DNA of 64,000 nt. Origin: Eutreptiella sp. 'Long Island Sound 2002' (Eukaryota; Protista; Euglenida). A program made the position numbers and the translations under genes. Location of the stretch: the NCBI GenBank assembly GCA_964036045.1, contig OZ038378.1:5146001-5210000 (forward strand), written 5' to 3'. Positions 698 to 58,900 of this stretch are shown piece after piece (position 1 is the stretch's first letter; every line of letters starts with the position of its first letter). A model generated the notes under the pieces. It had not been told where the DNA came from. It saw nothing but the letters and a program-made list of their open reading frames with translations, and did not search any database.

Positions 698-3351
698 GTT
701 CTGGGCAATGTGTCAAACCCCAAAGTCAACTCCTTAGGCTATGGTGCGCGAATAGGCCCAAAAGGCGCGGGGGGGGGGGGGGGCTTGAGGCGGTTTCCAT
801 TTTCGCAGGCCCCCTGCGGAGGTGACTTGGCGACTTTGAATCGAGAGATGTGTGAGCTGCCTGCTGCACTTGCCTCAGTCCGTCCGCACACACCTGCCGC
901 ACTAAGGACTCATTCTCGGATTTCATTCTGGTGAGCTGTTCAAAGAACTGCTTTTCACGGTGCTCTGCCTGAGCCTTGTCTGCATTGCTCTTGGTCTTCA
1001 TGGAATCCATCTGGACACAGCGTTGTGCGCAAGCGATGGCCGGGCAGTGCACAGCAGAGGGCAGCGGGAAAGAGGCACAGCAGTGGGAAGGGGAGGATCG
1101 CAGGGCACGGCATACGTCTTCTGTTCATCGCAGACAAACACCAACACATGATCCCAACGAGCTCCGTTGCCCAACTCTGACCACCCCCCGCTGGGCCTAA
1201 TTGACTGAACTGCCTCAAGGCGCTACCCAGGCTTGGATGAAGGACAGCCGCCCCACCCGTTCAAAGAGCAGGAAAAGGCCTGCCAAGTGCGGAGACAGGG
1301 TTCAGGGCTTTTTGGACAAACCACTGCCACGCCGTGCCCTGGAACACATGGACCGCCACACCACCACCACCGAACCAAAACGAGGGATGTCTGCCAGGCT
1401 TCATTGACGTGGGAAAGGAAACGGGCTGTCTGGGGCCAGTGCCAAGCAACACAGTCCGGTGGATCTGGAGGGAACTACACTCAAAGGGCATCACAAAACC
1501 GTCAGCCAGCCAACATGCACAGCATCAGCCCGCAGACGTTGCCAAACCGGACGTAAATCAACCTCCAAAACGCACTTTGGACGTGGCTACAGGAGCGAGC
1601 CATGGGTTGTACTCCACTTGGGACGCTACTACAGTACCAAGCCATGCATGCAACTCCCCTTTGGATGGTCGTAGCAATGGGACCAGCGAACATTCCAGAG
1701 TGTAGTTCAGCGGTATCGTTGCTGTTCACGTCGTCCAGGGACGCGCCTGGCCAAAGAGCACCAGCATCGGGCAGTGTGCCCACAACTTTCAGTCCTTGTA
1801 CCGCTGTTTGGACACAGCGTGGGGGGGGATATCCGCTGTGAGGTCCGCCTGATATGTCATGATACACGTTGGAGGAGATGCTTCAACCGAATCCCGCACC
1901 AGAAACTGCATCGATTGGGATCCGGATTTCCGGATTTCCGGATTTCCGGAGGGACGTTGTTCGACCAAAGCGACACGACAATCTCCCCAGGAGGTCTCCC
2001 AGGCGGTTCAAAGGGCAAGTACCTGCACCGTGTGTACCACAGAGGCGCTCATTCGAGACTCCCCTTCAACGGGCACTTGAGAGCACACGAGGCTATGAGA
2101 CAGTCCCTTGGGCCGACCCCCCCGATGCAAGAAACCCGCTGCGTGGGTTAGAGCCGGGCGCTGTGGGTCTGCAACGGCACGCGGGGCAAACACAGCCCCG
2201 AGGGCTACCTGCGCATTTGTCGCCAACTGCCGCTCGTACGCCGTGTTCTCGCTCTGTTTCGCGTCCGCCTGCAGCTGCTCGTACTTGGATCGCCAGCCGT
2301 CGACCTCCGCCTTCAACGTCGTCGTGCTCTCAAAAGCTTCCTTCTCCGCCTTCTCAAATGCCTCCTGCAGCTGCTTCAGCCGGAGATGGAGGGAGTCAAT
2401 CTCCGACGCACTGAACGTGCTCTTCTCAAAATGCTCCTTGTCCTTCTTCTCCAACTCGTTCGTGGTCTGCACCGCCAGCTTCTTGAAGTGCTCCAGTTCG
2501 CTCTTCATTGCCACGCTCTTCTCGAACGAGTCCTTATCACGCCTTTTGGGGGCACATGGGGAGGAGGTGTTGGGGGACTTTGACACGACGCACTCGCAGC
2601 AGAACGCTAACACCCCCAACGGGCAGTCGAGCTCAGCACTGCCGGGGGTGAGGACAACGCGATGGTTGCAGATCGTCCTCACCCGTGCTTCGTGCCCCGC
2701 CCTGCTACAGCAGGTAGACAGGCTCCTGGGAAGTGCTAGCCTCGCGTGACGGCTGATTGGCTACCCATCGGACTCTGCCGGACCAGCTATGGTGGAATTT
2801 CTCTCCAATCCCTTTATTCCTTGCAACTTGCGCCCCAAATATCTCAAAACTGGTGGTATTTACCCCTTTTTTACGACGTGCTCAATGCGACCGGAGGGGG
2901 GCCCCCTTGAGCAAGCGGCGAAGCCCTGTCCCAAGGGGTGCGGCCCTTTGCCGTTGCCCATTGAAGGAAGAAGTGTGGATGATTCCGGTGGAGAGTCCAG
3001 GAGCGTTGCCATCCTCTCAAAGGAGTCCTCATCGCCCCTTTTGGGGGGGGGGGGGGGAGTACGTTGGTCGAGGGTATGTGGTTCGGGGATGGGGGCAGGA
3101 GGGACTGAGTACGGGAAGGGCAGTTGCACTGGCTTGGGTGGGGGGGTCCCGTACCGTAATGGCTGATTGGTCGCTGTGTAGGACGATCGGGACCCGCTGC
3201 CATGTGTGTTGTGTGACCTGCTTGTCCATGGAGATCATTTGCGTCTTCAAGAGTGGGCGGGGGGCGGGGGTGCAGATATGTGGACTGACGGCTCAGCATG
3301 GCAGCAAATTGCCTCGGGGGCGTCCACTGCCCTGCCCCGCGCCCCCCCCTC

Positions 3352-3394
<43 letters not shown>

Positions 3395-42001: not shown

Positions 42002-44478
42002 AAACCCTGTGAAATTTCAATGCAATATTTTCAGGGACTGCCACATCTCTCGACGTAGCCTGTGTGGGGGCGCCATGGCAGTGTCTGCAAGCATTCGCTA
42101 GCCCCCCCCCCCTCCCGCCCCTCCGAATCAGAGTCTTCTGATTTCGTGCTTCTGTTTCTCTTGAAGGGAAGCGACAAAGGGACAATAAAGCCGGCGATGT
42201 AACAATGGAGGGTCCACCGCCAGTTCTTGCCCCCTGTTGAGCTCAGGAACCTGCAGACTCTGCCCCCCGAAACCCAAAACATAGCCCAACCCACTGTCCA
42301 TAACCTGCTTCCCAATAACGATGGACAGAATATCGCACAGTCCATGCAATCTTCCTGAGGGTATTGTTCACTCATCAACATGATGTCCGATTCTTTTGGA
42401 TGTCCTGTTCAGGAGAGATGGGGGAGTTCCAGACAGGCTGGTTCGGTGCCGCGTAGTGCCAGCGGTGTCCAGTGCCTTTGTGTGACCTATTGTTGATCGA
42501 GGTGCTATTGAGAGGGCAAGCTGCTCACTGTGGCAGCAGACTGCCCCCAAGGCGTTCACTCCCCTCCCGGCACCTGCAGGCTTCACACAGCCAGTCCCAT
42601 GACTGTAAGGGTGCTACCTCTTCCTGGCTGAGCCTGTAACCAGAGCACAGTGGAGTACAGGCAGGGTATCATCACATTCACAGGAGCCACTACTTAGCAC
42701 TGGCACACTGCCTTGAGTGTCACGCTGCACAGGGCAGACCCAGGGTTCCCACAGCCTCTCCAATGACGGGCCGTTATCGAATCGCAAGCAGCTCAAAGTC
42801 AGGGGACACACCAACAGGGCTCCCTCTAATGCGCTGCCTCAGGGGGTGAGGCCCTGCGCACTGCAACAGTCACCACACAACGCTTGTGTCAGTGGCAGTG
42901 CAGTGTTGCCGTGCAGTGTTGTTCAGTCACAGCATTTGGCCAAACGGCAGGGTCAAGTATGTTACATGGAGTGCCCAATGCCGTGCATCAATGCATGGCA
43001 AGCCTCTTGAAGGGGGTTTTACTTTGCACTGAGAGAAGCGCAACGGAACCCTCCAGACACTAGTCCATTTGGTCTTTTGGCAGACCAGAGGAGTTTGAGT
43101 AATTCAAAGTGCCTGTGAGCTCCCACTGCACGCCCAATGTGGTGCATCAGAACTGGACAAATATGTAACATGGGGGCTGCACTTGCAATGCCATCAGCTC
43201 AATTCTCAAGCAGGAGGATAACTCCCACCCCTCCTACGCGGGGACATTCCGTCAATCAGCACCGACCCCAATCGAGCCCCCCACAGGTGCAAGCCCTCCA
43301 CCCCTCCTCACCAACTTTTCGTGGTATTCATGTGTATTTGTATACACGGGGGCCCCACAGTGTTGCCTTGTGCATAGTGTTTACAAACCACAGACGATGC
43401 AGCGTCTGAAGGTTGCACATTCCCCCCCCATCCCCCCCCCCAAAATCAGCCAGCAGTCGGGGCTTTCTGCAGATGTGGGTTCCAAAGACAAGAGCATGCA
43501 TCACATGAAGCACAAAGCAATTGATACATCCTTGTATGGGGACCTGGCATAGCCAACTACCGTTTGGGGTCAAATTAGGACCCTTGCACGGCCTACTTTG
43601 TGCATACCACCTGAACACGTGTACATGGCGCACGCACCAACTCAACTGAACTTTCATTTGCAGTCGGGCCACAAGCCAGTACACCCTGACCCAAAGGTTT
43701 GCTCTCGCCCTCTACCATTCCAACACAGTCCTCAAGGTGCTGCAAACCTCCTTACCCCCAGGCAGCGTACTTGTAACCTTGCCCCATGGCCATGGTGGGG
43801 GTCTAGCACTATCCTATAGTTCTCAATGCATCATGATGCAGGGGTTACGGTACTCAGCATGGCGCCAGCACCTGTACATCTCGCTGCCGCAAACCGCAAA
43901 CCGACCGGTGTCGTGTTGCCAGGCACCAGTCCATTCTCACTTTGTTGGCAGAAAGGTACCCATGGTCACTGACGAGCATCTGTTTTATGTGCTGCCGGTG
44001 CGTGCCATCGCACTGCTATGACACAGCTTTCCAATGGGGGGGTGAGGTGTGTGGGTGGAGGGGGGGAATTTGTGAAGGTGTGTGGAGGGGAGGCGGATCT
44101 GTCTGGGGGAGAGACGTTTTGCATACCACTGGCTGATTTGGGTGGGCACTTGTGCACCCAGATCGGCAGCCCATTTGTCGTGCAGAGTGGCCTGGTTTGC
44201 ATGTGATATGTGATGGGAAGGTTGAATTGGGGTCAATATGGGCACCTAGGGTACAGAAATAGGACGTCAAGTCCGTCATGTCGGCTGCAGATGTTCACTG
44301 CATGTGTGGCTCTGCTCCGCACTGATTTGCATAGATTACTGACATATATTGAGCACAAACGACCATTGAGCCACCCCTTCCAAACGCGGTTCCGCAGTGT
44401 CCCTCACCACCCTCTCTAACATTCCCAAACCTCCTGATTCCAACAACCCCCACCCTCTGCCCCCCCCCCCCCCCCGCG

Positions 44479-45083
44479 CCTACTCCCCCGTGCACCCACG
44501 CATCCCCCACAACCCCCGTCCGCGCAGCAAAGGCATGAAGGAGAGGGTAGGGGGTTTGTGTTGCGCTCGCCAAAGGATGGACTGAGCGCGGGAACTTGGA
44601 GGAGAAAGGTTGTTATGTGCCCCCGTCGGGGAAACGACCCCGCAAGTGGCCATCCCAGGGCCCACCAGCCGCCGTTGGGGAGAGGTACCTCACCGCCGGC
44701 TTGGGATGGCCGCTTGGACGCACCTGGCCAACGGCGAAGGCATTTGCCTTCCTCTGCGTGGACTCGACGCAGAGAAGTGAAACAGGGCAAGTCCGGGGGC
44801 TCCGTTGGCACAACCGACCAAGGGAAAGGGAAGGGAAGGAGTGTGGTGAGGCCGATGGGCACGGTGGCCTACAGAGGGAAAGGCCAAGGGAAGGGAAAGG
44901 GGAGGGGAGAGGGAAGGTTAGGGCAAGGAGGAAGAGGAAGGTCAAACGGTGGTGAGAAGCTGATGGGCACCACCGCCTATGGAGGGAAAGGGTCCAAGGG
45001 AAGGGCAGCGAATGGCGATCGGCCAGTAGGCGCCGCCAGCTGCAGACGAGATCATCACACCATGGCGTCATGCCAAAACCCCC
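44479..45083 (+). repeat. 605-bp direct repeat (pseudo-LTR-like) copy 1
   Basis: CCTACTCCCCCGTG...CATGCCAAAACCCCC; matches 49768-50372 and 55056-55660. Confidence 0.95.
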
Positions 45084-45295
45084 ACATACCACGCCTGACG
45101 TGGAGTGCCCCCACACGGGGGCTGTATGGCGCGAAAGGCGCTCTACGTGCAGAAGAAGAGGCACGACAACAACCCCGTTGGTCACAAAGCCATGGAGCGG
45201 AAGCGTCGGAGCATTGGAGAGAAGTGAGGTGTGGAAAAGGATAGGACACGAGATGGAGCAAGGGTGGAAAGGGAACATGGCTGCCAGAAGCAGGA

Positions 45296-48200
45296 TTGAA
45301 GGTGACCAACTATTGGGGTGCTCTATATAGGAGGACGGCCCAAAAAGGAAAAGGCAAGGGAACCCTCGGAAGGCGAGGAACGGTTGACCCAGGTTGGGTG
45401 AATGATGAGGAGGGCGGAGGAGTTCGCTTGCAGAGCCAAACACCGGAATTGGGAAGGAGAAAAGGGATAGGGAAGGGGAAGGGAGGAAAAGGCAAAGGGA
45501 AGGGGAGACAACACGTGGAACACACAGAAGCAAGGAGTGGAAGAGGAATCCGGCTGAGGATCCAGCATCAGCATCACCGAGGAATGGAACGCACCGAGGA
45601 AAGGAGAAGTAGGGGAATGGAAAGGAGGATGCACTATCCATGGTACAAAGAGAAGGTACCACTACAACGAACAACAGTGGAAGGAGAGGTGAGATGGACA
45701 TGGCAGCAGCATTTTGAGGATTGCCGCAGAGTTTGGCGAGAAGGTCCCAAAACACAAAAGTTGCGTCGATTGTGGCAACTAATAAAGGAAGAACAATGGA
45801 AATGGAGGACAAGTGGACAAGAACATCGGATCCCAAGATGGGAAGAGGAAGGAGTGGCGGAAGCATACATGATGTACCACAAGCCGACAGGCAAAGCGTA
45901 CGCGGGAGTAGCGTACAATGGACACCAAGCACGGTTAAAGAAGAGATGGAGCAACCGTTGGGGGGATGAAGACTTGGTAAGTAGGGTGATGAGAACAAGT
46001 GAATCAATGGCGGATTGGATAGTATGGCCCGTGGAGAGGTTTCCCGGACAACGAAGAGGGCACATGGCGTTTTGGAGGAGGTCAAGCATGAGGGAGGGGT
46101 TTTGGGCCACACACTTGGAATGTTGGTGGCCAAAAGGGTTCAATGAGGGAACGACAGGAGGGGAGCACAGGGAAGGGGCCAGAAGGGATTGGGCACACAG
46201 AAGGTACACATTCCAGAGGGCGCACAGGGAAGGTTTGGTGACCTCGGAGGAGGCGAAATCAAGACGAACAAAGCCACAACCAAGAAAGGGTGAATGGCAA
46301 GTGGAGCTCCCCAAGGACATATTGGAGACATGGAACCAAGCAGTCCGGGAAGCGGCAAGCCAAGGGAAAGAGACCATGGGATTGTTGTGGGGGACAAGGA
46401 CCGAAAATGGGGTCAAAGTAGGGGGTCTACACATACCAAGACACGACGTACAAACAAGCCACCACTGTGCAGTGGGAGATGAGGCGCTCACAGAGGCGGT
46501 CAGTTGGGGCGCATCCTTGGGAGGAAAATTGGTTGGTTGGATACACACGCATCCAGGACATGTGCCGGTGCTATCAGCCTTGGACGTGTGCACCCTCAAC
46601 ACAATTGGCCAAACGCTATGGTCAATTATACCGGAAGGAGGCCCAGCAGTTGGAGTGGTGCAAAGTTGGACCTCTCCAGCGGATGAAGTGGCGTGTGCCC
46701 CACTGAAGGGGGGTCTAAAGGCCTACACAATGTCCGTCTTGGGCATGGAGGTGGCAAACAGATGTGCCGCAATCCGCCGAAAGAAACCGGGAGTGGATCA
46801 CCGGTATCACGAACATCTTGCTGGAGTTTGGGATGATGATGACCCTCACCCGGTTGGGAGGGAGCCGGAGGAAGTGCCGGTGGTCCTCGTGGAGGCCGAG
46901 GATGGTGGTTGTATGGACATGGGAAACAACAGGTGGTGGACCAAATGGTTGGGAGCAGGAAGCACACCTAAGGAAAAGGAGAACACCAAGCCCGCCAACA
47001 ATGAGGAGAGTGATAGCAGCACGAGCAGCAACGGGATAGCGAGCACGGTCGGACCAGAAGCTTGGTCGCAAAAGCGTGGTCCCAAGCACGCATGTGGGCT
47101 ATGCTGCAGACCGTTGAGGGCCAAGGAGGGAGCAGTGAGGTGCAGCCAGGGGCACTGGATGCACTTGAAGTGTGCTGGGGTCACTGTCTCCCAGGCGAAG
47201 AAGGTGTTCCGCAGCAACAGGGTGTTCCAGTGTAGGTGCAGAAAGGCAAGGCCAGCCAAATGGTTGCGGGAGGAAAGAGAGAGGCACAAGCAGAGGAGGA
47301 GAGAACAACGCAGCAAAGCGAGGAAGGCAGGGGTGGCGCCGGAGGAACAACCCCCCAAGCCACAAGCACGGGCCGAACCACAGCAAAGTGACTCCGAGAG
47401 ACCGGAAGTGGTTGGAGTGGATGGCCATCGCATTGTTCTCGGGGGAAGAGTAGCACTAACAGGCATGAAGAAAAAGATGGAATTGGAGGGGAAGACAGGT
47501 GAGGTTGAAAGCATCATCCAGGAACAAGGAAAAGTAAGACTCCGAATGGACTGTGGCAGAAGGGTTTTGGTGTCATTGGATAGGGTCAGGGTGCAAGAGG
47601 TGGAGCACATGGGAGGCGCCGAGGACTCAAAAGCTGCCCAACAACAACAGCACGGGGAAGAAACAAAAGGACGCGGGGTGGCGGGAGACAATGAACCGCA
47701 CGGAAGAAAGGAGGAAAGGAGTGAAGAAGGAGAGATGGGAGGGCAGGAAGAAACATTTGAACTATGGAATGGGGTGAGGCTAGTAGGGATGAGACAACCG
47801 GAGTTGGAGGGCCACAAGGGGGTGTTGGAGGAGATCTACAAGGACAAAGTGCAAGTGTTGTTAGTGGGAGGGATGCGCCGAGTAAAAGTGGACAAGAAGA
47901 AGGTGGTCCCGGAGGTAGTTGAGCCCGTTGAGGTGCTGCCCCCGGGTTTTGAAGGATGGAGCTTTCTTGAACAGATTGGAGTGGGTAGTGCACCCACCAT
48001 GGATGAAGTGAAGGCCGCATACAAAAAGTGGGTGTTGCGGTTACATCCGGACAAGAACATGAACAACATTGCCAAAGCCACCCACCTGTTCAAAAGGTTG
48101 ACCTCCGGCTACGAGGGATGGAAAAGTGCGCCCGGGGTGACACCGCCAAGGCCGGCGGAGGAACCACCCAACTACCAGTTCAACCCCACATACTTTCGAT

Positions 48201-48763
48201 CCAATTTCTGCAACAGCACAAGTTCGGCGGGGCAAACAGCCCCGGAGGAAGCGCCACCAAGTGCCAAAAACCCAGAAACGGAGGGCGATGGAGAGGGTTT
48301 TTGGTCTTTCTTGTGGGGAAGCAAAAGGCCCGGTCGTTCCGAACATGCGAGTGGAATGGGGGCTAGCCACGGTGAGGGTACACCGAAGGGCGCACCGCCA
48401 CCGGGGTCGGGAACGCAACGGACCCGGCGCCTCTTGTTCCATGAGAAGTTCCGGTGGCACACGCACCACGTCCGCGCCATCCAAGCGGACCGGATCCTCG
48501 CTGAGAAAAGGAGGAGAGGGTGGTTCTCCGACTACCCCGAGGCAGGAAGCAACATGTACTTATTGGCACCAGACCAGGTGAACAAAGTGCGAGTGCTAGC
48601 CTCAACGGTATGGGTGCCGGAGGTGAGACGTTGGGAGCCGGAGGTGTTCATCATCGGGGAGGGCATCAACTTCACAGTGGAGGACACAACCAGGTTGATG
48701 CAAAACTTGCACAGGGCAAACGTGATTGCCGAGCAAGTAGGCATCCGGCTGTACAAGGAGTAG
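45296..48763 (+). CDS. Element ORF2, 1155 aa: GIY-YIG nuclease (45851-46146), AMSH-like JAMM/MPN+ (46295-46820), PHD-like finger (47093-47239), two KOW-like domains (47428-47590, 47755-47910), J-domain (47966-48116), unknown C-terminus
   Basis: Motifs EAYMMY..TGKAYAG...R...REGFW...PKGFN; KETMGLL...WIHTHPGHVPVLSALD; CGLC..C..H..H..C..CRC; EVKAAYKKWVLRLHPDKN. The true start codon is uncertain (the ORF is called from TTG). Confidence 0.85.
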   Translation: MKVTNYWGALYRRTAQKGKGKGTLGRRGTVDPGWVNDEEGGGVRLQSQTPELGRRKGIGKGKGGKGKGKGRQHVEHTEARSGRGIRLRIQHQHHRGMERTEERRSRGMERRMHYPWYKEKVPLQRTTVEGEVRWTWQQHFEDCRRVWREGPKTQKLRRLWQLIKEEQWKWRTSGQEHRIPRWEEEGVAEAYMMYHKPTGKAYAGVAYNGHQARLKKRWSNRWGDEDLVSRVMRTSESMADWIVWPVERFPGQRRGHMAFWRRSSMREGFWATHLECWWPKGFNEGTTGGEHREGARRDWAHRRYTFQRAHREGLVTSEEAKSRRTKPQPRKGEWQVELPKDILETWNQAVREAASQGKETMGLLWGTRTENGVKVGGLHIPRHDVQTSHHCAVGDEALTEAVSWGASLGGKLVGWIHTHPGHVPVLSALDVCTLNTIGQTLWSIIPEGGPAVGVVQSWTSPADEVACAPLKGGLKAYTMSVLGMEVANRCAAIRRKKPGVDHRYHEHLAGVWDDDDPHPVGREPEEVPVVLVEAEDGGCMDMGNNRWWTKWLGAGSTPKEKENTKPANNEESDSSTSSNGIASTVGPEAWSQKRGPKHACGLCCRPLRAKEGAVRCSQGHWMHLKCAGVTVSQAKKVFRSNRVFQCRCRKARPAKWLREERERHKQRRREQRSKARKAGVAPEEQPPKPQARAEPQQSDSERPEVVGVDGHRIVLGGRVALTGMKKKMELEGKTGEVESIIQEQGKVRLRMDCGRRVLVSLDRVRVQEVEHMGGAEDSKAAQQQQHGEETKGRGVAGDNEPHGRKEERSEEGEMGGQEETFELWNGVRLVGMRQPELEGHKGVLEEIYKDKVQVLLVGGMRRVKVDKKKVVPEVVEPVEVLPPGFEGWSFLEQIGVGSAPTMDEVKAAYKKWVLRLHPDKNMNNIAKATHLFKRLTSGYEGWKSAPGVTPPRPAEEPPNYQFNPTYFRSNFCNSTSSAGQTAPEEAPPSAKNPETEGDGEGFWSFLWGSKRPGRSEHASGMGASHGEGTPKGAPPPGSGTQRTRRLLFHEKFRWHTHHVRAIQADRILAEKRRRGWFSDYPEAGSNMYLLAPDQVNKVRVLASTVWVPEVRRWEPEVFIIGEGINFTVEDTTRLMQNLHRANVIAEQVGIRLYKE

Positions 48764-49342
48764 AAGATGGAAGCCAAGTGAGAAGCGGACAAGCCCCACC
48801 CGCGGGTGACAAGAGGGCGTGGAAGCGCACGGTCGCACAGTTCTGACGGCGTCAAGGTGACGGGGTGCAGCTTGTTCAGCGCAGTGCCGAGCACAAAGGC
48901 GCGACCCGGAACGCACCATGGCATGGCCTAGGCCTTGAAGCAAGAGGGACTGAGACCGGGCGCCAAGCGACCCAGGAACCCAAGGGACGGGCAACCCGGC
49001 GCCGGGTGAAGAAAGAAGAACAATGAAAGCAAAAAGCCTGATGGAAAGGAGAGTCTCACACCATCAACATGGCTCTGCTGGGGAGGAGAGGATCCTCCAG
49101 CCACCGAGACTCACACTGGGGAGCCGCGGCCCCCAGTGATACAGCAACAAGGCACAACGATGTGGTCTGAGGTACGGCCGTGGACGGGCCTCTGGACCCA
49201 TGCCCAATGGAGACGGCGCCGCAGTCTCCATTGGATGCGCCCCGGCTACCACAACGCGCAGCGAGCTTTCTCGCCGGCAGAGTAGGGGGCAAGGCCAAAC
49301 AACAGGCAGGGGGAAGGCAACCCCCGCACTTTTTTAGCCAGG

Positions 49343-50533
49343 GTGGTGACCAACACCGACCAAAACAAAACAATGAACTCTACACGTGCACCGAGTTCTT
49401 CTCGGGGGGTCCAATGGGGCCTCAGCGAGATGCCCGATGTGGCAACGCAAGCCCACCGGGGGCCGCGCTCTCAAGGGAGTGACCACGGCAGTAAGTCCCA
49501 GCGTGCTGGCACTGAGAAGCGAGCAGGGGAGAGACTCCTTCCCTCGCGTAGCAACTCAACCAGAAAAGGGACGCACCACGTCGTCAAGCGCCCGGACCAA
49601 GCCGGGAGAAGGGGGCCAGCAAGGGGCCCTACGCACCTCCACCCAACACGGGACACCACCGTCAACCCAACAACAACTCGCTCCTATGTTGAGGTGGTCC
49701 GGGGAGTCGCGCAACGAAGTGGGCGGCCAGCGACGGTAAGAGGCCCACCCCACGTCACCCGCTACATCCTACTCCCCCGTGCACCCACGCATCCCCCACA
49801 ACCCCCGTCCGCGCAGCAAAGGCATGAAGGAGAGGGTAGGGGGTTTGTGTTGCGCTCGCCAAAGGATGGACTGAGCGCGGGAACTTGGAGGAGAAAGGTT
49901 GTTATGTGCCCCCGTCGGGGAAACGACCCCGCAAGTGGCCATCCCAGGGCCCACCAGCCGCCGTTGGGGAGAGGTACCTCACCGCCGGCTTGGGATGGCC
50001 GCTTGGACGCACCTGGCCAACGGCGATGGCATTTGCCTTCCTCTGCGTGGACTCGACGCAGAGAAGTGAAACAGGGCAAGTCCGGGGGCTCCGTTGGCAC
50101 AACCGACCAAGGGAAAGGGAAGGGAAGGAGTATGGTGAGGCCGATGGGCACGGTGGCCTACAGAGGGAAAGGCCAAGGGAAGGGAAAGGGGAGGGGAGAG
50201 GGAAGGTTAGGGCAAGGAGGAAGAGGAAGGTCAAACGGTGGTGAGAAGCTGATGGGCACCACCGCCTATGGAGGGAAAGGGTCCAAGAGAAGGGCAGCGA
50301 ATGGCGATCGGCCAGTAGGCGCCGCCAGCTGCAGACGAGATCATCACACCATGGCGTCATGCCAAAACCCCCACATACCACGCCTGACGTGGAGTGCCCC
50401 CACACGGGGGCTGTATGGCGCGAAAGGCGCTCTACGTGCAGAAGAAGAGGCACGACAACAACCCCGTTGGTCACAAAGCCATGGAGCGGAAGCGTCGGAG
50501 CATTGGAGAGAAGTGAGGTGTGGAAAAGGATAG
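49343..50533 (+). CDS. Element ORF1 candidate (R/G/K-rich, 396 aa), same frame as ORF2 and separated from it by a single TAG
   Basis: Long open frame with SYVEVV and GKGKG repeats. The T-poor strand makes chance ORFs likely, and the third copy has a premature TAA at 55402. Confidence 0.3.
   Translation: MVTNTDQNKTMNSTRAPSSSRGVQWGLSEMPDVATQAHRGPRSQGSDHGSKSQRAGTEKRAGERLLPSRSNSTRKGTHHVVKRPDQAGRRGPARGPTHLHPTRDTTVNPTTTRSYVEVVRGVAQRSGRPATVRGPPHVTRYILLPRAPTHPPQPPSAQQRHEGEGRGFVLRSPKDGLSAGTWRRKVVMCPRRGNDPASGHPRAHQPPLGRGTSPPAWDGRLDAPGQRRWHLPSSAWTRRREVKQGKSGGSVGTTDQGKGKGRSMVRPMGTVAYRGKGQGKGKGRGEGRLGQGGRGRSNGGEKLMGTTAYGGKGSKRRAANGDRPVGAASCRRDHHTMASCQNPHIPRLTWSAPTRGLYGAKGALRAEEEARQQPRWSQSHGAEASEHWREVRCGKG
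49768..50372 (+). repeat. 605-bp direct repeat copy 2 (shared between the two units)
   Basis: Three substitutions seen versus copy 1. Confidence 0.95.
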
Positions 50534-50584
50534 GACACGAGATGGAGCAAGGGTGGAAAGGGAACATGGCTGCCAGAAGCAGGA

Positions 50585-53500
50585 TTGAAGGTGACCAACT
50601 ATTGGGGTGCTCTATATAGGAGGACGGCCCAAAAAGGAAAAGGCAAGGGAACCCTCGGAAGGCGAGGAACGGTTGACCCAGGTTGGGTGAATGATGAGGA
50701 GGGCGGAGGAGTTCGCTTGCAGAGCCAAACACCGGAATTGGGAAGGAGAAAAGGGATAGGGAAGGGGAAGGGAGGAAAAGGCAAAGGGAAGGGGAGACAA
50801 CACGTGGAACACACAGAAGCAAGGAGTGGAAGAGGAATCCGGCTGAGGATCCAGCATCAGCATCACCGAGGAATGGAACGCACCGAGGAAAGGAGAAGTA
50901 GGGGAATGGAAAGGAGGATGCACTATCCATGGTACAAAGAGAAGGTACCACTACAACAAACAACAGTGGAAGGAGAGGTGAGATGGACATGGCAGCAGCA
51001 TTTTGAGGATTGCCGCAGAGTTTGGCAAGAAGGTCCCAAAACACAAAAGTTGCGTCGATTGTGGCAACTAATAAAGGAAGAACAATGGAAATGGAGGACA
51101 AGTGGACAAGAACATCGGATCCCAAGATGGGAAGAGGAAGGAGTGGCGGAAGCATACATGATGTACCACAAGCCGACAGGCAAAGCGTACGCGGGAGTAG
51201 CGTACAATGGACACCAAGCACGGTTAAAGAAGAGATGGAGCAACCGTTGGGGGGATGAAGACTTGGTAAGTAGGGTGATGAGAACAAGTGAATCAATGGC
51301 GGATTGGATAGTATGGCCCGTGGAGAGGTTTCCCGGACAACGAAGAGGGCACATGGCGTTTTGGAGGAGGTCAAGCATGAGGGAGGGGTTTTGGGCCACA
51401 CACTTGGAATGTTGGTGGCCAAAAGGGTTCAATGAGGGAACGACAGGAGGGGAGCACAGGGAAGGGGCCAGAAGGGATTGGGCACACAGAAGGTACACAT
51501 TCCAGAGGGCGCACAGGGAAGGTTTGGTGACCTCGGAGGAGGCGAAATCAAGACGAACAAAGCCACAACCAAGAAAGGGTGAATGGCAAGTGGAGCTCCC
51601 CAAGGACATATTGGAGACATGGAACCAAGCAGTCCGGGAAGCGGCAAGCCAAGGGAAAGAGACCATGGGATTGTTGTGGGGGACAAGGACCGAAAATGGG
51701 GTCAAAGTAGGGGGTCTACACATACCAAGACACGACGTACAAACAAGCCACCACTGTGCAGTGGGAGATGAGGCGCTCACAGAGGCGGTCAGTTGGGGCG
51801 CATCCTTGGGAGGAAAATTGGTTGGTTGGATACACACGCATCCAGGACATGTGCCGGTGCTATCAGCCTTGGACGTGTGCACCCTCAACACAATTGGCCA
51901 AACGCTATGGTCAATTATACCGGAAGGAGGCCCAGCAGTTGGAGTGGTGCAAAGTTGGACCTCTCCAGCGGATGAAGTGGCGTGTGCCCCACTGAAGGGG
52001 GGTCTAAAGGCCTACACAATGTCCGTCTTGGGCATGGAGGTGGCAAACAGATGTGCCGCAATCCGCCGAAAGAAACCGGGAGTGGATCACCGGTATCACG
52101 AACATCTTGCTGGAGTTTGGGATGATGATGACCCTCACCCGGTTGGGAGGGAGCCGGAGGAAGTGCCGGTGGTCCTCGTGGAGGCCGAGGATGGTGGTTG
52201 TATGGACATGGGAAACAACAGGTGGTGGACCAAATGGTTGGGAGCAGGAAGCACACCTAAGGAAAAGGAGAACACCAAGCCCGACAACAATGAGGAGAGT
52301 GATAGCAGCACGAGCAGCAACGGGACAGCGAGCACGGTCGGACCAGAAGCTTGGTCGCAAAAGCGTGGTCCCAAGCACGCATGTGGGCTATGCTGCAGAC
52401 CGTTGAGGGCCAAGGAGGGAGCAGTGAGGTGCAGCCAGGGGCACTGGATGCACTTGAAGTGTGCTGGGGTCACTGTCTCCCAGGCGAAGAAGGTGTTCCG
52501 CAGCAACAGGGTGTTCCAGTGTAGGTGCAGAAAGGCAAGGCCAGCCAAATGGTTGCGGGAGGAAAGAGAGAGGCACAAGCAGAGGAGGAGAGAACAACGC
52601 AGCAAAGCGAGGAAGGCAGGGGTGGCGCCGGAGGAACAACCCCCAAGCCACAAGCACGGGCCGAACCACAGCAAAGTGACTCCGAGAGACCGGAAGTGGT
52701 TGGAGTGGATGGCCATCGCATTGTTCTCGGGGGAAGAGTAGCACTAACAGGCATGAAGAAAAAGATGGAATTGGAGGGGAAGACAGGTGAGGTTGAAAGC
52801 ATCATCCAGGAACAAGGAAAAGTAAGACTCCGAATGGACTGTGGCAGAAGGGTTTTGGTGTCATTGGATAGGGTCAGGGTGCAAGAGGTGGAGCACATGG
52901 GAGGCGCCGAGGACTCAAAAGCTGCCCAACAACAACAACACGGGGAAGAAACAAAAGGACGCGGGGTGGCGGGAGACAATGAACCGCACGGAAGAAAGGA
53001 GGAAAGGAGTGAAGAAGGAGAGATGGGAGGGCAGGAAGAAACATTTGAACTATGGAATGGGGTGAGGCTAGTAGGGATGAGACAACCGGAGTTGGAGGGC
53101 CACAAGGGGGTGTTGGAGGAGATCTACAAGGACAAAGTGCAAGTGTTGTTAGTGGGAGGGATGCGCCGAGTAAAAGTGGACAAGAAGAAGGTGGTCCCGG
53201 AGGTAGTTGAGCCCGTTGAGGTGCTGCCCCCGGGTTTTGAAGGATGGAGCTTTCTTGAACAGATTGGAGTGGGTAGTGCACCCACCATGGATGAAGTGAA
53301 GGCCGCATACAAAAAGTGGGTGTTGCGGTTACATCCGGACAAGAACATGAACAACATTGCCAAAGCCACCCACCTGTTCAAAAGGTTGACCTCCGGCTAC
53401 GAGGGATGGAAAAGTGCGCCCGGGGTGACACCGCCAAGGCCGGCGGAGGAACCACCCAACTACCAGTTCAACCCCACATACTTTCGATCCAATTTCTGCA

Positions 53501-54051
53501 ACAGCACAAGTTCGGCGGGGCAAACAGCCCCGGAGGAAGCGCCACCAAGTGCCAAAAACCCAGAAACGGAGGGCGATGGAGAGGGTTTTTGGTCTTTCTT
53601 GTGGGGAAGCAAAAGGCCCGGTCGTTCCGAACATGCGAGTGGAATGGGGGCTAGCCACGGTGAGGGTACACCGAAGGGCGCACCGCCACCGGGGTCGGGA
53701 ACGCAACGGACCCGGCGCCTCTTGTTCCATGAGAAGTTCCGGTGGCACACGCACCACGTCCGCGCCATCCAAGCGGACCGGATCCTCGCTGAGAAAAGGA
53801 GGAGAGGGTGGTTCTCCGACTACCCCGAGGCAGGAAGCAACATGTACTTATTGGCACCAGACCAGGTGAACAAAGTGCGAGTGCTAGCCTCAACGGTATG
53901 GGTGCCGGAGGTGAGACGTTGGGAGCCGGAGGTGTTCATCATCGGGGAGGGCATCAACTTCACAGTGGAGGACACAACCAGGTTGATGCAAAACTTGCAC
54001 AGGGCAAACGTGATTGCCGAGCAAGTAGGCATCCGGCTGTACAAGGAGTAG
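50585..54051 (+). pseudogene. Element ORF2 copy 2 with a 1-bp deletion frameshift (C6 to C5 near 52640)
   Basis: Matches 45296-48763 apart from a few substitutions and is split into the 718-aa and 508-aa ORFs. The indel could be a homopolymer sequencing error. Confidence 0.85.
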
Positions 54052-55055
54052 AAGATGGAAGCCAAGTGAGAAGCGGACAAGCCCCACCCGCGGGTGACAA
54101 GAGGGCGTGGAAGCGCACGGTCGCACAGTTCTGACGGCGTCAAGGTGACGGGGTGCAGCTTGTTCAGCGCAGTGCCGAGCACAAAGGCGCGACCCGGAAC
54201 GCACCATGGCATGGCCTAGGCCTTGAAGCAAGAGGGACTGAGACCGGGCGCCAAGCGACCCAGGAACCCAAGGGACGGGCAACCCGGCGCCGGGTGAAGA
54301 AAGAAGAACAATGAAAGCAAAAAGCCTGATGGAAAGGAGAGTCTCACACCATCAACATGGCTCTGCTGGGGAGGAGAGGATCCTCCAGCCACCGAGACTC
54401 ACACTGGGGAGCCGCGGCCCCCAGTGATACAGCAACAAGGCACAACGATGTGGTCTGAGGTACGGCCGTGGACGGGCCTCTGGACCCATGCCCAATGGAG
54501 ACGGCGCCGCAGTCTCCATTGGATGCGCCCCGGCTACCACAACGCGCAGCGAGCTTTCTCGCCGGCAGAGTAGGGGGCAAGGCCAAACAACAGGCAGGGG
54601 GAAGGCAACCCCCGCACTTTTTTAGCCAGGGTGGTGACCAACACCGACCAAAACAAAACAATGAACTCTACACGTGCACCGAGTTCTTCTCGGGGGGTCC
54701 AATGGGGCCTCAGCGAGATGCCCGATGTGGCAACGCAAGCCCACCGGGGGCCGCGCTCTCAAGGGAGTGACCACGGCAGTAAGTCCCAGCGTGCTGGCAC
54801 TGAGAAGCGAGCAGGGGAGAGACTCCTTCCCTCGCGTAGCAACTCAACCAGAAAAGGGACGCACCACGTCGTCAAGCGCCCGGACCAAGCCGGGAGAAGG
54901 GGGCCAGCAAGGGGCCCTACGCACCTCCACCCAACACGGGACACCACCGTCAACCCAACAACAACTCGCTCCTATGTTGAGGTGGTCCGGGGAGTCGCGC
55001 AACGAAGTGGGCGGCCAGCGACGGTAAGAGGCCCACCCCACGTCACCCGCTACAT

Positions 55056-55660
55056 CCTACTCCCCCGTGCACCCACGCATCCCCCACAACCCCCGTCCGC
55101 GCAGCAAAGGCATGAAGGAGAGGGTAGGGGGTTTGTGTTGCGCTCGCCAAAGGATGGACTGAGCGCGGGAACTTGGAGGAGAAAGGTTGTTATGTGCCCC
55201 CGTCGGGGAAACGACCCCGCAAGTGGCCATCCCAGGGCCCACCAGCCGCCGTTGGGGAGAGGTACCTCACCGCCGGCTTGGGATGGCCGCTTGGACGCAC
55301 CTGGCCAACGGCGATGGCATTTGCCTTCCTCTGCGTGGACTCGACGCAGAGAAGTGAAACAGGGCAAGTCCGGGGGCTCCGTTGGCACAACCGACCAAGG
55401 GTAAGGGAAGGGAAGGAGTGTGGTGAGGCCGATGGGCACGGTGGCCTACAGAGGGAAAGGCCAAGGGAAGGGAAAGGGGAGGGGAGAGGGAAGGTTAGGG
55501 CAAGGAGGAAGAGGAAGGTCAAAGGGTGGTGAGAAGCTGATGGGCACCACCGCCTATGGAGGGAAAGGGTCCAAGGGAAGGGCAGCCAATGGCGATCGGC
55601 CAGTAGGCGCCGCCAGCTGCAGACGAGATCATCACACCATGGCGTCATGCCAAAACCCCC
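55056..55660 (+). repeat. 605-bp direct repeat copy 3 (3' end of the array)
   Basis: Homology to the unit stops after GCCAAAACCCCC. Confidence 0.95.
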
Positions 55661-55927
55661 CCCCGCGACCCCTCCAACCTTCCCTTTGCAGTTAGCAACC
55701 TTTGCAACAAGGTGTTGTTCAGACATATACGGCACGATGCCCCCCCCCCCCCACCACCACCACTTCATCATAACGGGCAGGGTACAGGGACGGGGAATAA
55801 TAATATTGGGAGTTGTGCAGGGCGAGGGGGCCCAATTTTGTGCCGACTGACCATGGCGATGCAGCATCCCGCTTGCAACCCTCTGCATGTATACCATTTA
55901 TCTTTACCTGAAGCACGAGGTGGCACC

Positions 55928-58900
55928 ATGGATCATTTGCCCAAGAACAAGCTGCTCCGGGAAATGGCAAGGAGACCTGCCTTTGGTATCTTCTGTTCCC
56001 TGCCCCCTGTCGCTGGAGGTCCCGTGTATTCAGCAGTTGATAGCACCAAGCAGGAGAAAGAAACATAGGGTCTGCAGCATTCAGTGCAGCCTTTGTCAGA
56101 TGTTTATCTAGGTTGCTCTAGGCGACTAGGCCTCTAGGGTGCATCCAGGCTACTCTAGGGTGCATCTAGGCTACTCCTGGATGCATATAGGCTACTCTAG
56201 GGTGCATGCAGGCTACTCTGGGGCATATAGGCAACTGTCGGGTGCATGTAGGCTACTGAGGGTACTCCAGGGTGTTTGACATGATAATGGCTGATGGTTC
56301 GGCAACAGCGAAAGACAAGGACTGAGGTCATCTTGTTTGATGGTATAGTGTACATGGAACACAGCATGAGGGTGTGATTGATGCGGTCAACCTGTTTGCA
56401 TTGCACCATGTCACCGCTACTTTCTTCAGTTTTGAATGCATTTGTGAGCAGGCCTATGCTGCCCTACCCATGCAGCTCCAAAGGCTCCAAAGCATCCTGC
56501 TGTTGCCACTCTTGGTCCTGCAGTGGCTGCCCTCCCTCTCAGATGTCCGGCGCTGGTCGCGTGCGTATGCAACATTCGGCCCTCAGCAGTTGCTCTTCCA
56601 TTTTCGCATGCGTGGCATCCGCAGCTGTGTGGCTTGTGGTAGACTGATTCTGCCTGGCGAGAAGTATTATGAATGTGGCCACTGCAACGACTACAACGTG
56701 TGTGCGAGCTGCCACCGGGACACTGTGCAACGACCCAGTGCATGTGTTCTGGACAGGCAGCACTGCATGTTCTTGGAGCACGAGGTGTTAGTAGTGAACG
56801 TGCAGCCACTGCTTGCAAAAGCCTGCTGCACCGCCGACGCTCTTATGGTGGCCTTCTCTGCCTATGCCCAGCGCCCCTGCCTTGGACATCGGCCTCAGGA
56901 GGGGCACACAGGTCACACAACCTCCTCTCTCTGTGGCGAGCAGGTTACACGCGGGTTGTGCATCAACATCACCTGCAGCAACCGCAAAAGAGGCAACGTG
57001 CCATAATTCGGGGGCTGCCCCCCATCAGTGGCAGAGTTTGCCATTGACACCCCTTCAGGCAGGCCAGCGCTTGAGGGGGGCAGGGCCGGCGGCCCAAGAA
57101 GGGGATTGCTGGCCGATGTGCTGTCGTGCACCATCAATCGTGCTCAATGTCAACTGTCAATGATGGATACACAGTGTAGCTTTGCTTGGCGCATGGTGCA
57201 CACATTATGGCAACCGCCACCACCAAATAAGGGTTGTGCCAAGCCACCTTGCTGTTGAAGGTCTAGCAAGTGGGCTAATCATCGGCTGAAAATTGCTTGC
57301 CACATTTCAATAGCAACAAGCATGCAAGCCTCCAGCACGATGCCTAGATAATTCGTGGTCTTCTTTTGCTTACATGCAAAATTTTCACACCACCCCAATT
57401 ATAAGCACGCGCTTGCTTATTTTTTTTTGCTTGCTTATAATTGTTGCTTGGTTATCATCGGAGCATCCCCTGTTTTCACTACAGAAAGATGGCTCTCCCT
57501 GACACCAATGACCCCCATTTCTTTTATGCTTTGCCGGTTGCAGCTGAGGGCTCTGGTGCTCCAGCCGCGAAGCCTAGGAGCTGCGCCAGCCAGGGAGGGG
57601 GTAGGGCGGTACATGTAGCCCAGCCAGCCAGCTACCGAGCGCCGAGCAATCGGGCCCCCCTTGGTAACTCTATTTGGAGGTCCCACAAATAGTGCCATGG
57701 AGGTTACAGGACATTGCACCATGGGAGGTGGGGGGGTTCGTTCGTGCCACCTATCACATGGGCGTGCGTCAACCCCATGGCTGCCAATGAGCCTTGGATA
57801 CATCTGCGTATCTACAGCACAGGTGGACCAAATGGCAGCAAGCAAGCAACAATGAATGGAAAGGCAAAGGTAGAGCCATGGCCGATGCCAGTTTCCCTAT
57901 CATGCCTCGCGCCCCATCAAGCTGATTCCGGCAGAAAAGCGCGCTCATACAATGTGCATGTGTTCCTGGCTTGCTGTTGGTCAGGCCTGGGATGGCACCT
58001 TCTGGCCACTTGTGATACTACAGACTGCACCTGGTTTGTGCATCTACTGTGCAACCCATGACAAGTAGATGGGAGGCTGCCAATTGTGTTAAGGAGCACA
58101 AGTTGAATAATAAACAGTTGGTCAAGGTTTGGTACCCCCTACATTCAATTGCACCCTCAGAACAGTTCGGTGTATAACCTGTAAACTTGGCTCCAATTTG
58201 CACATTGGTAGGGCTTGTAGGGCATGCACCCACTAGGCTCTCTTTCAGCATCCACTGTTTTGCATAGTTCCAGCAAGGTTATCATGTTGTTATCATCAAA
58301 AATCAGATCTTTTTAAATCTGCGTGTTCAGACTGGCTGGTCTCTGGGCTTGTGACCATCCCCATACAAGCCTGATGTCAAGGTGACACTTCCAAGGGGGG
58401 GGGGCAATTGGCAACTTGCAACCACCAGTCCTCCTGACTGAGGGAGCCGGAGGGGACACAGTTAGGCCACCAAAGGCGCCAAGTAGTTAAAAGCGGGGAG
58501 CTGGAGGTCTTCCTGCTGCCGAGCCGAAAAAGACAAGCCTGAGCCAGGTTGATGCCGTCCGGGGTGCACATAGCTGCACACAACGTGTTCATGCCAGACG
58601 TGGAGGATAGTAGCTGATGCTGATGCTGATGGGCTGTACCCACCCGTATTCTTTCCCAAGTATACGCATGACGAAAGCGTAAAATCTGGTGTATTTTTGT
58701 CGCTTGTTGAGTTTGCCCCTGCCGTTTTTTTCTTGCTTTGGATGGGCATGTTATCGGGAATGGATTGCTCCACAGGCAACTGCTCGAACTCTTGAGGTGC
58801 TCATGCACATGTTTGGCGTGCCAGCACATCTCGCTCGTTTCCATTCTACTGGATGTGATTCATGGATCGCCCTCGATGGCACACACTGCACTCAACTTGC

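Follow-up and report, generated by a model that had tools for sequence, protein, structure and literature searches.

The window analysed here, a 64,000-nucleotide stretch of contig OZ038378.1 from the euglenid Eutreptiella sp. 'Long Island Sound 2002', contains at 44479–55660, as assembled, a tandem array of the form R-body-R-body-R, in which R is a repeat of 605 bp and the two units measure 5289 and 5288 bp (self-BLAST and repeat search; Table 1). The stretches 44479–50372 and 49768–55660 are 99.76% identical across 5894 bp, and the outermost repeats (44479–45083 and 55056–55660) are 99.34% identical across 605 bp. The two units differ by 8 substitutions and 1 indel. They are joined seamlessly (5289>1; 605>606), which is also the case in the rest of the family; no additional C-tract separates them, and the repeat search of the array found no inverted repeats. 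The array is flanked on both sides by (C)nGCG. On direct reading, the 12-mer CCCCCCCCCGCG is found at 44467–44478, starting inside the C16 run from 44460, and again at 55656–55667, where its first five Cs are also the last five bases of the element. This architecture and the overlap with the terminal C5, as described in an earlier note on this DNA, were thus borne out. The array is far beyond chance, because its unit sequence recurs with 98.7–99.5% identity at many genomic sites (2561 first-look candidates).

Table 1. Features of the array in the window
Feature	Position	Strand	Basis
Upstream target-site duplication, C16 (44460–44475) + GCG (44476–44478)	44460–44478	+	Direct reading
R1, pseudo-LTR: 5'-truncated upstream partial copy, last 605 nt of the unit	44479–45083	+	Repeat alignment, fixed 3' end
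Body of unit 1 (unit positions 606–5289), with RT deletion	45084–49767	+	Alignment to full-length copies
TAG nonsense codon, codon 61 from the pseudo-LTR ATG (family state CAG)	45242–45244	+	Family contigs read C at 45242
Open frame of 1155 aa, unit 1	45296–48763	+	ORF, Pfam, family alignment
GIY-YIG endonuclease core	45863–46150	+	Family alignment, Pfam on relatives, profile match to 1ln0
Deletion junction, unit 1	46237–46238	+	Alignment to full-length copies
R2, middle repeat, chimeric	49768–50372	+	Comparison of Rs
Body of unit 2	50373–55055	+	Repeat alignment
R3, 3'-terminal 605 nt, ending at the fixed 3' end of the family, ...GCCAAAACCCCC	55056–55660	+	Direct reading, copy comparison
3' target copy, C9 + GCG; first five Cs common to element end (microhomology)	55656–55667	+	Direct reading

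The long open frame of unit 1 encodes, in this order, an N-terminal extension, the GIY-YIG core, the deletion junction, a JAB/MPN+ domain (motif HxHx7SxxD at 46535–46585), a PHD-like finger (47093–47179), a weak KOW-like motif (Pfam E 1.7), a DnaJ domain (HPD at 48035–48058) and a C-terminal part. A reverse transcriptase (RT) is not found in the unit; Pfam matches to the 1155-aa product are JAB, Prok-JAB and DnaJ only. In the endonuclease core, AYMMY replaces GIY and YAG replaces YIG; the conserved residues R, E and N are retained, R occupies the position of the usual H, and there is no CCHH finger. The ATG used by the family lies at 45062 within R1, in the Kozak-like context ACCATGG and 22 nt before the fixed 3' end. 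The nonsense codon downstream of it is shared by unit 2 (50531–50533), which has the identical deletion junction (51526/51527) and, in addition, a 1-bp deletion after 52638 that causes a frameshift. Of the earlier description 'endonuclease-plus, RT-minus', the retained GIY-YIG region and the missing RT stand, but the endonuclease is nominal, as both units carry TAG at codon 61.

Elsewhere in this 2.28-Gb genome the unit exists in a full-length form of 8634 bp (98.7–99.5% alike), with a single 2348-codon polyprotein that starts at the ATG 22 nt before the 3' boundary of the unit. Its order is GIY-YIG, CxC, telomerase-like RT (FVDD), CCCH, JAB deubiquitinase, PHD and DnaJ. When two such copies, C20 (L033+L004) and C10 (L034+L007), are aligned with the array unit, they show an additional 3345 bp at unit position 1760; this insert encodes the motifs SCNCF, GYKF, EDRG, YGIWK..R.ISG, DFVAMY, GFGMG and FVDD. 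In the L033 ORF, GIY-YIG (aa 485–580) is followed by SCNCF (aa 782–786), GYKF (aa 821–824) and the RT. Full-length copies thus hold GIY-YIG and a telomerase-type RT in the same ORF, with the endonuclease placed N-terminally via CxC and GxKF/Y as in Naiad/Chlamys elements, while the window units are without the RT region.

Pfam RVT_1 and Pfam GIY-YIG gave no match in this protein itself. The insert region has 668 homologs, some with a weak RVT_1 match or an N-terminal GIY-YIG, and the RT motifs of Penelope-like elements (PLEs) are conserved among 40 relatives (family consensus DKA...K.HK...R.I.G...D.....Y...G.PMG...DD). An AlphaFold model of the RT region has a pLDDT of 90.6, and its best 15 PDB matches are all telomerase RTs (E 5e-9 to 3e-6); the roughly 85 residues from DFVAMY to GFGMG, a candidate insertion-in-fingers domain between RT motifs A and B, are modelled as a helix and strands. 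In the family alignment A2, the Y, G, R, E and N of GIY-YIG are invariant, the near-invariant H being R in this family, and the CxC cysteines are invariant or near-invariant. Pfam GIY-YIG is matched by 9 of the 20 aligned relatives, and the A2 profile matches the catalytic domain of I-TevI (1ln0, E 0.005). The stretch from GIY to YIG is free of cysteines, and CxxC is absent upstream. The lack of a CCHH finger and of an upstream CX2-5CxxC linker, together with C-tract targets, points to Chlamys rather than Naiad. By domain order, motifs, RT fold and target, the family is a young, high-copy Penelope-like retrotransposon of the Naiad/Chlamys kind. The earlier note had described an element without reverse transcriptase; this is correct for the array copy and not for the family, whose 8634-bp copies encode the enzyme and represent the RT-bearing partner sharing R that the note had considered.

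A hammerhead was found neither in the unit nor in the 5' half of the full-length copy (Rfam, gathering score and E≤10). Hammerheads occur in the pseudo-LTR of canonical PLE clades; since their absence is the rule in Naiad/Chlamys (PMC8557442), this result does not exclude membership. It leaves the proposed circular RNA, or retrozyme, origin unsupported.

About 26 independent copies with unrelated flanks have one fixed 3' end (...GCCAAAACCCCC). Five copies are truncated at their 5' ends, at c20 positions 3796, 3807, 4047, 4808 and 5137; for the 3'-terminal 164 nt there are at least 847 candidate sites, versus 169 for an internal 120-mer. The pseudo-LTR measures 605, 782 and 1525 bp in three copies, as expected of PLEs, in which variable pseudo-LTRs arise via partial tandems and 5' truncation is frequent. 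All six copies whose two ends were both read are inserted at a C-tract and have target duplications of variable length, consisting of the C-tract and 3–9 further bases, once about 25: (C)n is followed by GCGGTCT, AGTATCAC, GCAC, CATATGCCC or GCG. The target arrangement of the array, a C-tract with 3–9 unique bases repeated on the 3' side, is seen likewise in L006, L008, L023 and C20. A fixed 3' end, variable 5' truncation and variable target duplications had been predicted from the array, and the approximately 26 copies, five truncation points and six duplicated targets agree with this; Penelope-type insertion of the array, at a C-tract target overlapping the terminal C5, is supported. Other copies show short re-copies, 19–20 nt long, of the tail of the element. 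Around the initiation site, a stem-loop falls short of significance (z −1.5).

The deletion in the array removes 3345 bp (1115 codons) in frame, and with them CxC, GxKF, the whole RT and the CCCH finger. Its joint has a 2-nt GG microhomology and is not GT-AG, and family contigs diverge from the window on both sides of 46237/46238. Among the 40 scored of 169 candidates, a coverage that a second site with the deletion could have escaped, the junction was found in none but the two units of this array. Three other deletion variants of the family are each confined to a single locus as well. Judged from the alignments, the array unit is an internal-deletion derivative of the 8634-bp autonomous PLE and not an RT-less element type. 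Because the junction and the three other variants are single-locus, we see no evidence that RT-minus copies are mobilized in trans (40 of 169 junction candidates scored). The same RT-less structure at several loci, by which a trans-mobilized non-autonomous derivative would be recognized, was not encountered in this sample, and the earlier assumption of such an element with RT supplied in trans is not needed. The deleted copies look like dead-on-arrival or post-insertion defects rather than a propagating RT-minus lineage.

The three repeats differ in a way that bears on the history of the tandem. At position 260 of R the family and R1 have A, while R2 and R3 have the derived T; at position 469 the family and R3 have G, while R1 and R2 have the derived C. 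R2 is a chimera, its 5' part resembling R3 and its 3' part R1, with two private G>A changes in addition. R1 and R3 differ at 4 of 605 bp, the two bodies at 6 of 4684 bp (Fisher p=0.02). Five private changes are common to both bodies, which suggests that time elapsed before the duplication. The chimeric R2 and the greater divergence of R1/R3 favour a single insertion, consisting of the pseudo-LTR and one deleted unit, followed by unequal crossover, an argument that uses two informative sites and assumes equal mutation rates in R and body. As R2 has two private changes where about 0.4 are expected, R may mutate faster than the body, or gene conversion may have acted.

On balance we consider it probable that the array is a defective tandem copy of a young Naiad/Chlamys-type PLE, in which the RT was deleted once before unequal crossover produced the second unit, and that it is a dead copy. 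PLE reverse transcription begins internally, at an AC-rich site close to where the ORF starts (PMC11167929). In our model the endonuclease would nick a (C)n.(G)n tract on its G-strand, and the freed (G)n 3' end would pair with the CCCCC at an AC-rich initiation site, which lies a short way into the ORF of the element RNA and from where the RT would copy toward the 5' end of that RNA. The 3345 nt would be skipped at the GG microhomology, either by the RT or by later repair, and a switch to a second template stretch would add the 605-nt partial upstream copy, that is, the pseudo-LTR. The product of insertion would be R-body-R between (C)nGCG flanks. Later, the 3' R of one chromatid would recombine with the 5' R on the other, an unequal crossover that would generate the second deleted unit and the chimeric middle R. 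Further decay after the crossover, such as the frameshift in unit 2, would be that of a dead copy and not of a functioning RT-less partner element.

It is possible, if rather doubtful, that the whole 2.1-mer arose in one target-primed event, as had been proposed earlier, the template being a transcript of several units, tandem or circular, from a non-autonomous element that already carried the deletion, and the enzyme being supplied in trans by full-length copies. The seamless joints lacking an extra C-tract and the single pair of target duplications around the whole array agree with this. Moreover, multicopy head-to-tail arrays are a frequent outcome when non-autonomous Chlamys elements insert (PMC8557442), and an mRNA comprising several copies has been proposed as the PLE template (PMC11167929). 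A chimeric R2 could also result if the RT switched between homologous stretches of two terminally redundant RNA templates. However, a single event requires a source locus with the deletion, and none was found among the 40 of 169 candidates scored; the single-locus state of the three other variants means that trans-mobilization is not seen in the family, and no RNA-circularizing hammerhead was detected. Copies of one RNA should lack derived states common to just two of the three Rs, of which two sites exist; R1 and R3 also differ more from each other than the two bodies do (p=0.02). The claim of one target-primed event is thus doubtful. We regard as unlikely its variant in which the chimeric R2 and the seamless joints record a homology-guided switch between two terminally redundant RNAs within one event, primed telomerase-style by a (G)n DNA end on the C5 of an internal AC-rich site. 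If this were true, the locus and the 19–20-nt tail re-copies would be sequence-level evidence for the PLE integration pathway.

An assembly artefact, in which a single deleted unit with its pseudo-LTR was entered twice, for instance because two haplotypes were placed one behind the other, is very improbable. The family is of very high copy number, 99% alike and prone to misassembly, the host is probably polyploid, and the differences between the units could be allelic; read evidence comes from k-mer contigs of the sample, which are too short to span the array. One of these contigs, however, bridges the 5' junction by 30 nt and confirms it. The flanks are single-copy in the assembly, so that no second haplotig was merged, and the chimeric R2 and the private changes in all three Rs fit a real duplication with later divergence. 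We dismiss an LTR retrotransposon, a DIRS/Ngaro-type tyrosine-recombinase element and a plain segmental duplication of non-mobile DNA: R-body-R resembles LTR-internal-LTR, but the repeat is a 5'-truncated upstream copy of no fixed length, TG..CA ends, integrase, RNase H and recombinase are lacking, the RT fold is telomerase-like and paired with GIY-YIG, the length of the target duplications is variable, and non-mobile DNA is incompatible with the many dispersed copies that share a fixed 3' end.

The defective tandem PLE copy has its closest counterparts in Chlamys elements, known from green algae, Chara, Selaginella and Physarum (Craig et al. 2021, PMC8557442). Common to both are the order GIY-YIG > CxC > GxKF > DK(x) > RT, a putatively equivalent long insert between RT motifs A and B, GIY-YIG without a CCHH finger, the lack of a canonical hammerhead, partial tandems giving rise to pseudo-LTRs, many 5'-truncated copies, (C)n as a target, PHD fingers as accessory domains and long units (3.3–8.2 kb reported for Chlamys). 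Chlamys targets are (CA)n or (C)n, and the elements described include head-to-tail arrays of multiple copies as well as a transcribed copy that lacks 2.8 kb internally (PMC8557442). The euglenid family differs in its host, euglenids being mentioned 0 times in PMC8557442, in an RT too divergent for Pfam RVT_1, in DRG for DKG and R for the conserved H of the endonuclease, and in a C-terminus of CCCH, JAB/MPN+, PHD and DnaJ in place of the deubiquitinase-like (Josephin) extension of one Chara family (PMC8557442). With canonical Penelope/Poseidon elements such as PAc of Anolis (Frangieh et al. 2024, PMC11167929) it shares tandems and partial tandems with pseudo-LTRs, an ORF start at the pseudo-LTR end, a 3' boundary shortly inside the ORF at an AC-rich site, and a telomerase-like RT with GIY-YIG. 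PAc has a C-terminal endonuclease, an AT-rich target, a hammerhead and an initiation site without homology to the cut DNA (PMC11167929), whereas in the euglenid family the endonuclease is N-terminal, the target a C-tract overlapped by the terminal C5, and no hammerhead was found.

MRC1 and other non-autonomous Chlamys derivatives of Chlamydomonas resemble the array copy in being RT-less, in having pseudo-LTRs and head-to-tail arrays and in their similarity to the autonomous family at the 3' end; they propagate in many copies, whereas the deleted form of the array was seen at one locus only (40 of 169 candidates scored). Tandem LTR-internal-LTR-internal-LTR structures formed by unequal recombination have the same outcome, with one pair of target duplications and a recombinant middle repeat, but contain true LTRs instead of pseudo-LTRs of a target-primed element. 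As a candidate LTR retrotransposon, the array was rejected on the variable lengths of repeat and target duplication and the missing integrase. Non-LTR retrozymes are likewise PLE-linked tandem, non-coding or defective derivatives; they are short, with hammerheads allowing circular RNA (bioRxiv 10.64898/2026.07.22.740005), whereas the array unit keeps most of the polyprotein.

As the defective product of an element of known kind, the array is ordinary, and all its structural features have been published for Chlamys PLEs. We found no report of PLEs in euglenids in the literature, and Penelope is absent from the published repeat table of Euglena gracilis (classes DNA, LINE, SINE, LTR and unknown); PLEs bearing pseudo-LTRs are easily annotated as 'LTR' or 'unknown'. 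This family, whose near-identical copies number hundreds to thousands, widens the host range of endonuclease-first PLEs to include euglenids. For the poorly understood mechanism of PLE integration it provides a clean, young data set: a constant 3' end, insertion at C-tracts, target duplications of varying length, one-off deletions within the element and a recombinant tandem.

The earlier note had read the array as R-body-R-body-R, flanked on both sides by the same 12-mer and devoid of reverse transcriptase (RT), and all three points were borne out. Self-comparison of the window matched 44479-50372 with 49768-55660 at 99.76% identity (5894 bp) and R1 with R3 at 99.34% (605 bp); therefore, the layout is R-body-R-body-R, with units (R plus body) of 5289 and 5288 bp. 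No inverted repeats were found by this comparison. Direct reading located the 12-mer on either side of the array, whose 3' end reads ...CCAAAACCCCC, then CCCCGCG. In the open frame of unit 1, Pfam recognised JAB/Prok-JAB and DnaJ domains only, and no RT. The plus strand of each unit is strongly purine-rich. In the genome search the right flank was unique, as was the left flank except for an old dispersed repeat of about 70-75% identity. Each flank thus occurs once in the assembly, and no empty paralogue or haplotig of the array site was found there.

Features of the array and its surroundings (window coordinates), variable positions of R, and other internal deletions of the family (c20, coordinates on the full-length C20 copy)
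Feature	Position	Strand	Details
Old dispersed repeat, left flank	43800-44040		~250 bp; 68-87% identity; >200 candidate sites genome-wide
C16 tract + GCG	44460-44478		directly precedes array start
12-mer CCCCCCCCCGCG	44467-78; 55656-67
R1	44479-45083
Two ~115-nt repeats inside R	44800-45030		rich in GGGAAGGG; each contains a GGTGAG..CGATGGGCAC..GCCTA..GAGGGAAAGG block
Open frame, unit 1	45296-48763	+	1155 aa
R2	49768-50372
Frame interruption, unit 2	after 52638		1-bp deletion
R3	55056-55660
21-bp minisatellite CTCTAGGGTGCATCCAGGCTA	56132-56255		~5-6 copies; ~470 bp right of array
Variable site	R position 260		family A; R1 A; R2 T and R3 T (derived)
Variable site	R position 347		family A; R1 A; R2 A; R3 T (private)
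Variable site	R position 365		family G; R1 G; R2 A (private); R3 G
Variable site	R position 469		family G; R1 C and R2 C (derived); R3 G
Variable site	R position 521		family G; R1 G; R2 A (private); R3 G
Variable site	R position 532		family G; R1 G; R2 G; R3 C (private)
Deletion, assembly sequence C19	c20 2035-4505		found once
Deletion, assembly sequence C18	c20 1860-3793		found once
Deletion, C10:62.8 Mb	c20 2000-4329		found once

Searches of the host assembly (2.28 Gb) yielded 2561 first-look candidate sites for the 5289-bp unit, and the 26 copies with the best scores match it at 98.7-99.5% identity. Unit position 1760 is the exact site of extra sequence in most of these 26. Complete reading of C20 (L033+L004) and C10 (L034+L007) gave, in both cases, a full-length unit of 8634 bp, i.e. 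the window unit plus 3345 bp encoding the RT. These two copies thus represent the RT-bearing partner sharing R for which a search had been proposed, and the window unit is a deletion derivative of this element. The loss of 1115 codons leaves the reading frame intact, and the joint shows GG microhomology only; canonical splicing was rejected as the cause of the deletion, the ends not being GT..AG in any of three registers. The family encodes a single polyprotein, since an in-frame TGA of the C20 copy is private and 28 other copies have GGA. It comprises 2348 codons from an ACCATGG start located 22 nt before the 3' boundary of the unit. One or two private stops occur in each of the two full copies.

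The earlier proposal of a non-autonomous element with RT supplied in trans gained no support. Among 40 scored of 169 candidate sites, a 120-mer across the deletion joint matched in full only at the two units of the window, the remaining scored sites matching one half only. No contig across the junction occurs among the k-mer contig pieces listed. Three other internal deletions were found in the family. As each variant, that of the window included, was found at one place, these deletions would be one-off defects and not lineages spreading with borrowed RT.

Fixed 3' ends, variable 5' truncation and variable-length target-site duplications, all predicted for this family, were seen among its copies. 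In about 26 independent copies the element stops at the identical base (...GCCAAAACCCCC) and unrelated flanks follow, most of which begin with further Cs; loose ends at 45083 in sample contigs repeat the pattern. The 5' truncations lie at five different internal positions. Partial copies of 605 bp (window), 782 bp (C10) and 1525 bp (C20) precede the full-length ones, and because this length varies, R is a pseudo-LTR of arbitrary length and not a defined repeat. As expected from 5' truncation, the 3'-terminal 164 nt have at least 847 candidate sites, compared with 169 for an internal 120-mer. In all six copies with both ends read, a C-tract of 9–16 bases lies directly upstream of the 5' end. 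Five of these copies have a short unique stretch after the tract (GCG in the window, otherwise GCGGTCT, AGTATCAC, GCAC or CATATGCCC), and tract and stretch together recur at the 3' side; in C10 the C-tract stands instead after a duplication of ~25 bp. The 5' joints of family copies sometimes contain extra bases or short re-copies.

Some copies show further peculiarities. A single further copy of the last ~19–20 bases (GCGTCATGCCAAAACCCCC) follows the fixed 3' end in L022 (after 5636, reverse strand) and in L029 (after 1439). The RT seems to have initiated again, or to have begun an abortive second copy, at its start site, which is reminiscent of telomerase-style repeat addition or of the ‘tail’ of Penelope-like elements (PLEs). 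Chains of short 5'-truncated copies with C-tracts between them, every one ending at the fixed 3' end, occur in L014 (5632-6209) and L028/L029 (C10:52.114-52.121 Mb). They suggest that copies inserted one after another, each into the C-tract that its predecessor had left, a route to tandems other than that of the seamlessly joined array. Family copies also cluster within tens of kilobases, for example at C3:13.09-13.16, C4:23.49-23.57, C1:6.14-6.17 and C8:70.74-70.90 Mb, suggesting that insertion favours certain hot spots, that the elements target their own C-tracts or that duplication has been local. At C18:13159674-13353603 one internal element piece appears seven times, mostly ~40 kb apart (gaps 13–41 kb), so that a copy of the element apparently lies within a large segmental tandem repeat. 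The window itself contains 22 runs of C or G of at least nine bases, compared with five of A or T; such long runs being very frequent, the preferred target is abundant in this genome.

As to how the array became multimeric, we lean towards a two-step history. An R-body-R insertion would have come first; after an interval of time, unequal crossover between the two Rs would have produced a chimeric middle R. The units differ by eight substitutions and one indel. Differences in R were polarised against 26–36 other copies: the 5' part of R2 corresponds to the downstream R and its 3' part to the upstream R. A crossover point between R positions 260 and 347 would in one step account for four of the six variable sites, two sites being informative and gene conversion being able to mimic the pattern. 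An interval before duplication is consistent with the data because R1 and R3 differ more (4 of 605 sites) than do the bodies (6 of 4684; p=0.02), although R may mutate faster (two private changes in R2 against ~0.4 expected), and because the two bodies have in common five changes that are private to this locus.

The one target-primed event of the earlier note is weakened by the chimeric R2 and this divergence, and survives as a possible but doubtful alternative. The same R2 would arise if the RT switched by homology from one terminally redundant RNA to another, but this requires a deleted source copy, and none was found. An assembly artefact is very unlikely. The read evidence consists of k-mer contigs from three to four sequencing runs: one sample has a contig that extends 30 nt across the 5' junction with zero differences, but all of these contigs break at repeats, none spans the array and they carry no information on unit number. 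A tandem built by a second copy landing in the terminal C-tract of the first was rejected, as the unit joints lack the extra C-tract seen in L028/L029.

The RT and the endonuclease were identified by profiles and fold search only. Pfam revealed nothing relevant in either piece, even at E<=10, and a single-sequence PDB search with the RT piece gave no match. The missing 3345 bp encode, in order, SCNCF (CxC), GYKF, EDRG (at the DKG position), YGIWK...R.ISG, DFVAMY, GFGMG, FVDD and a CCCH finger. An exhaustive HMMER search retrieved 668 relatives, some with weak RVT_1 or an N-terminal GIY-YIG at the Pfam threshold. In a 40-sequence alignment of RT relatives the catalytic D and DD and the PLE-type motifs are conserved, and the four best PDB matches of its profile, though weak, are all reverse transcriptases. 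The AlphaFold model of the RT (pLDDT 90.6) retrieved telomerase RTs as its 15 best matches (E 5e-9 to 3e-6), followed by a group II intron RT.

The GIY-YIG core lies upstream of the deletion and is retained in the window units. The N-terminal part gave no significant BLASTP match to one relative with a GIY-YIG, and the family alignment was used instead: Y, G, R, E and N are invariant, the usual H is replaced by R, Pfam matches GIY-YIG in 9 of 20 aligned relatives, and the profile matches the catalytic domain of I-TevI. The claim of an endonuclease-plus element stands as regards this core, but codon 61 is TAG in both units against CAG in the family, and neither unit would yield endonuclease if the pseudo-LTR ATG is where translation begins. 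In the protein P0002, the closest long RT homologue, the RT is followed by an OTU-like cysteine protease (below the Pfam threshold) and DnaJ, compared with JAB and DnaJ in the window family. It seems that the class of deubiquitinase is exchanged among related elements and the J-domain retained.

Naiad/Chlamys elements are diagnosed by the order GIY-YIG, CxC, GxKF, RT, a long A-B insert and the lack of a hammerhead (PMC8557442). Our family has the same domain order and the long A-B insert, and lacks the CCHH finger and the hammerhead, as in the Chlamys type. Rfam detected no hammerhead or other credible RNA family in the whole window (gathering score) or in the unit and the full-length 5' half (E<=10). 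The CUGAUGG/CCGAUGG strings in the R-internal repeats resemble a hammerhead core without matching it, and Rfam reported no ribozyme. The 3' end of the family is fixed at an AC-rich site that lies a few bases into the ORF, a parallel to the internal initiation demonstrated in vitro for an Anolis PLE (PMC11167929); a stem-loop at the family's site was not significant (z-score -1.5).

The retroposition features of the family match those of Chlamys elements, for which pseudo-LTRs, 5' truncation, (C)n targets, deleted copies and multicopy head-to-tail arrays have been described (PMC8557442), so that every structural feature of the array is already on record. That paper does not mention euglenids, and in our literature search ‘Euglena’ and ‘Penelope-like’ co-occurred only in an unrelated study of a foraminiferan mitogenome. 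The host assembly contains 3309 exact occurrences of the published 24-nt Euglena spliced leader (none of a reversed control), which identifies the host as a euglenid; a dinoflagellate spliced-leader relic was rejected, with no match at up to three mismatches. What is new is the host, a euglenid, together with the extreme divergence of the RT and the C-terminal JAB, PHD and DnaJ module. These points pertain to the family and not to the array, which is an ordinary defective copy.
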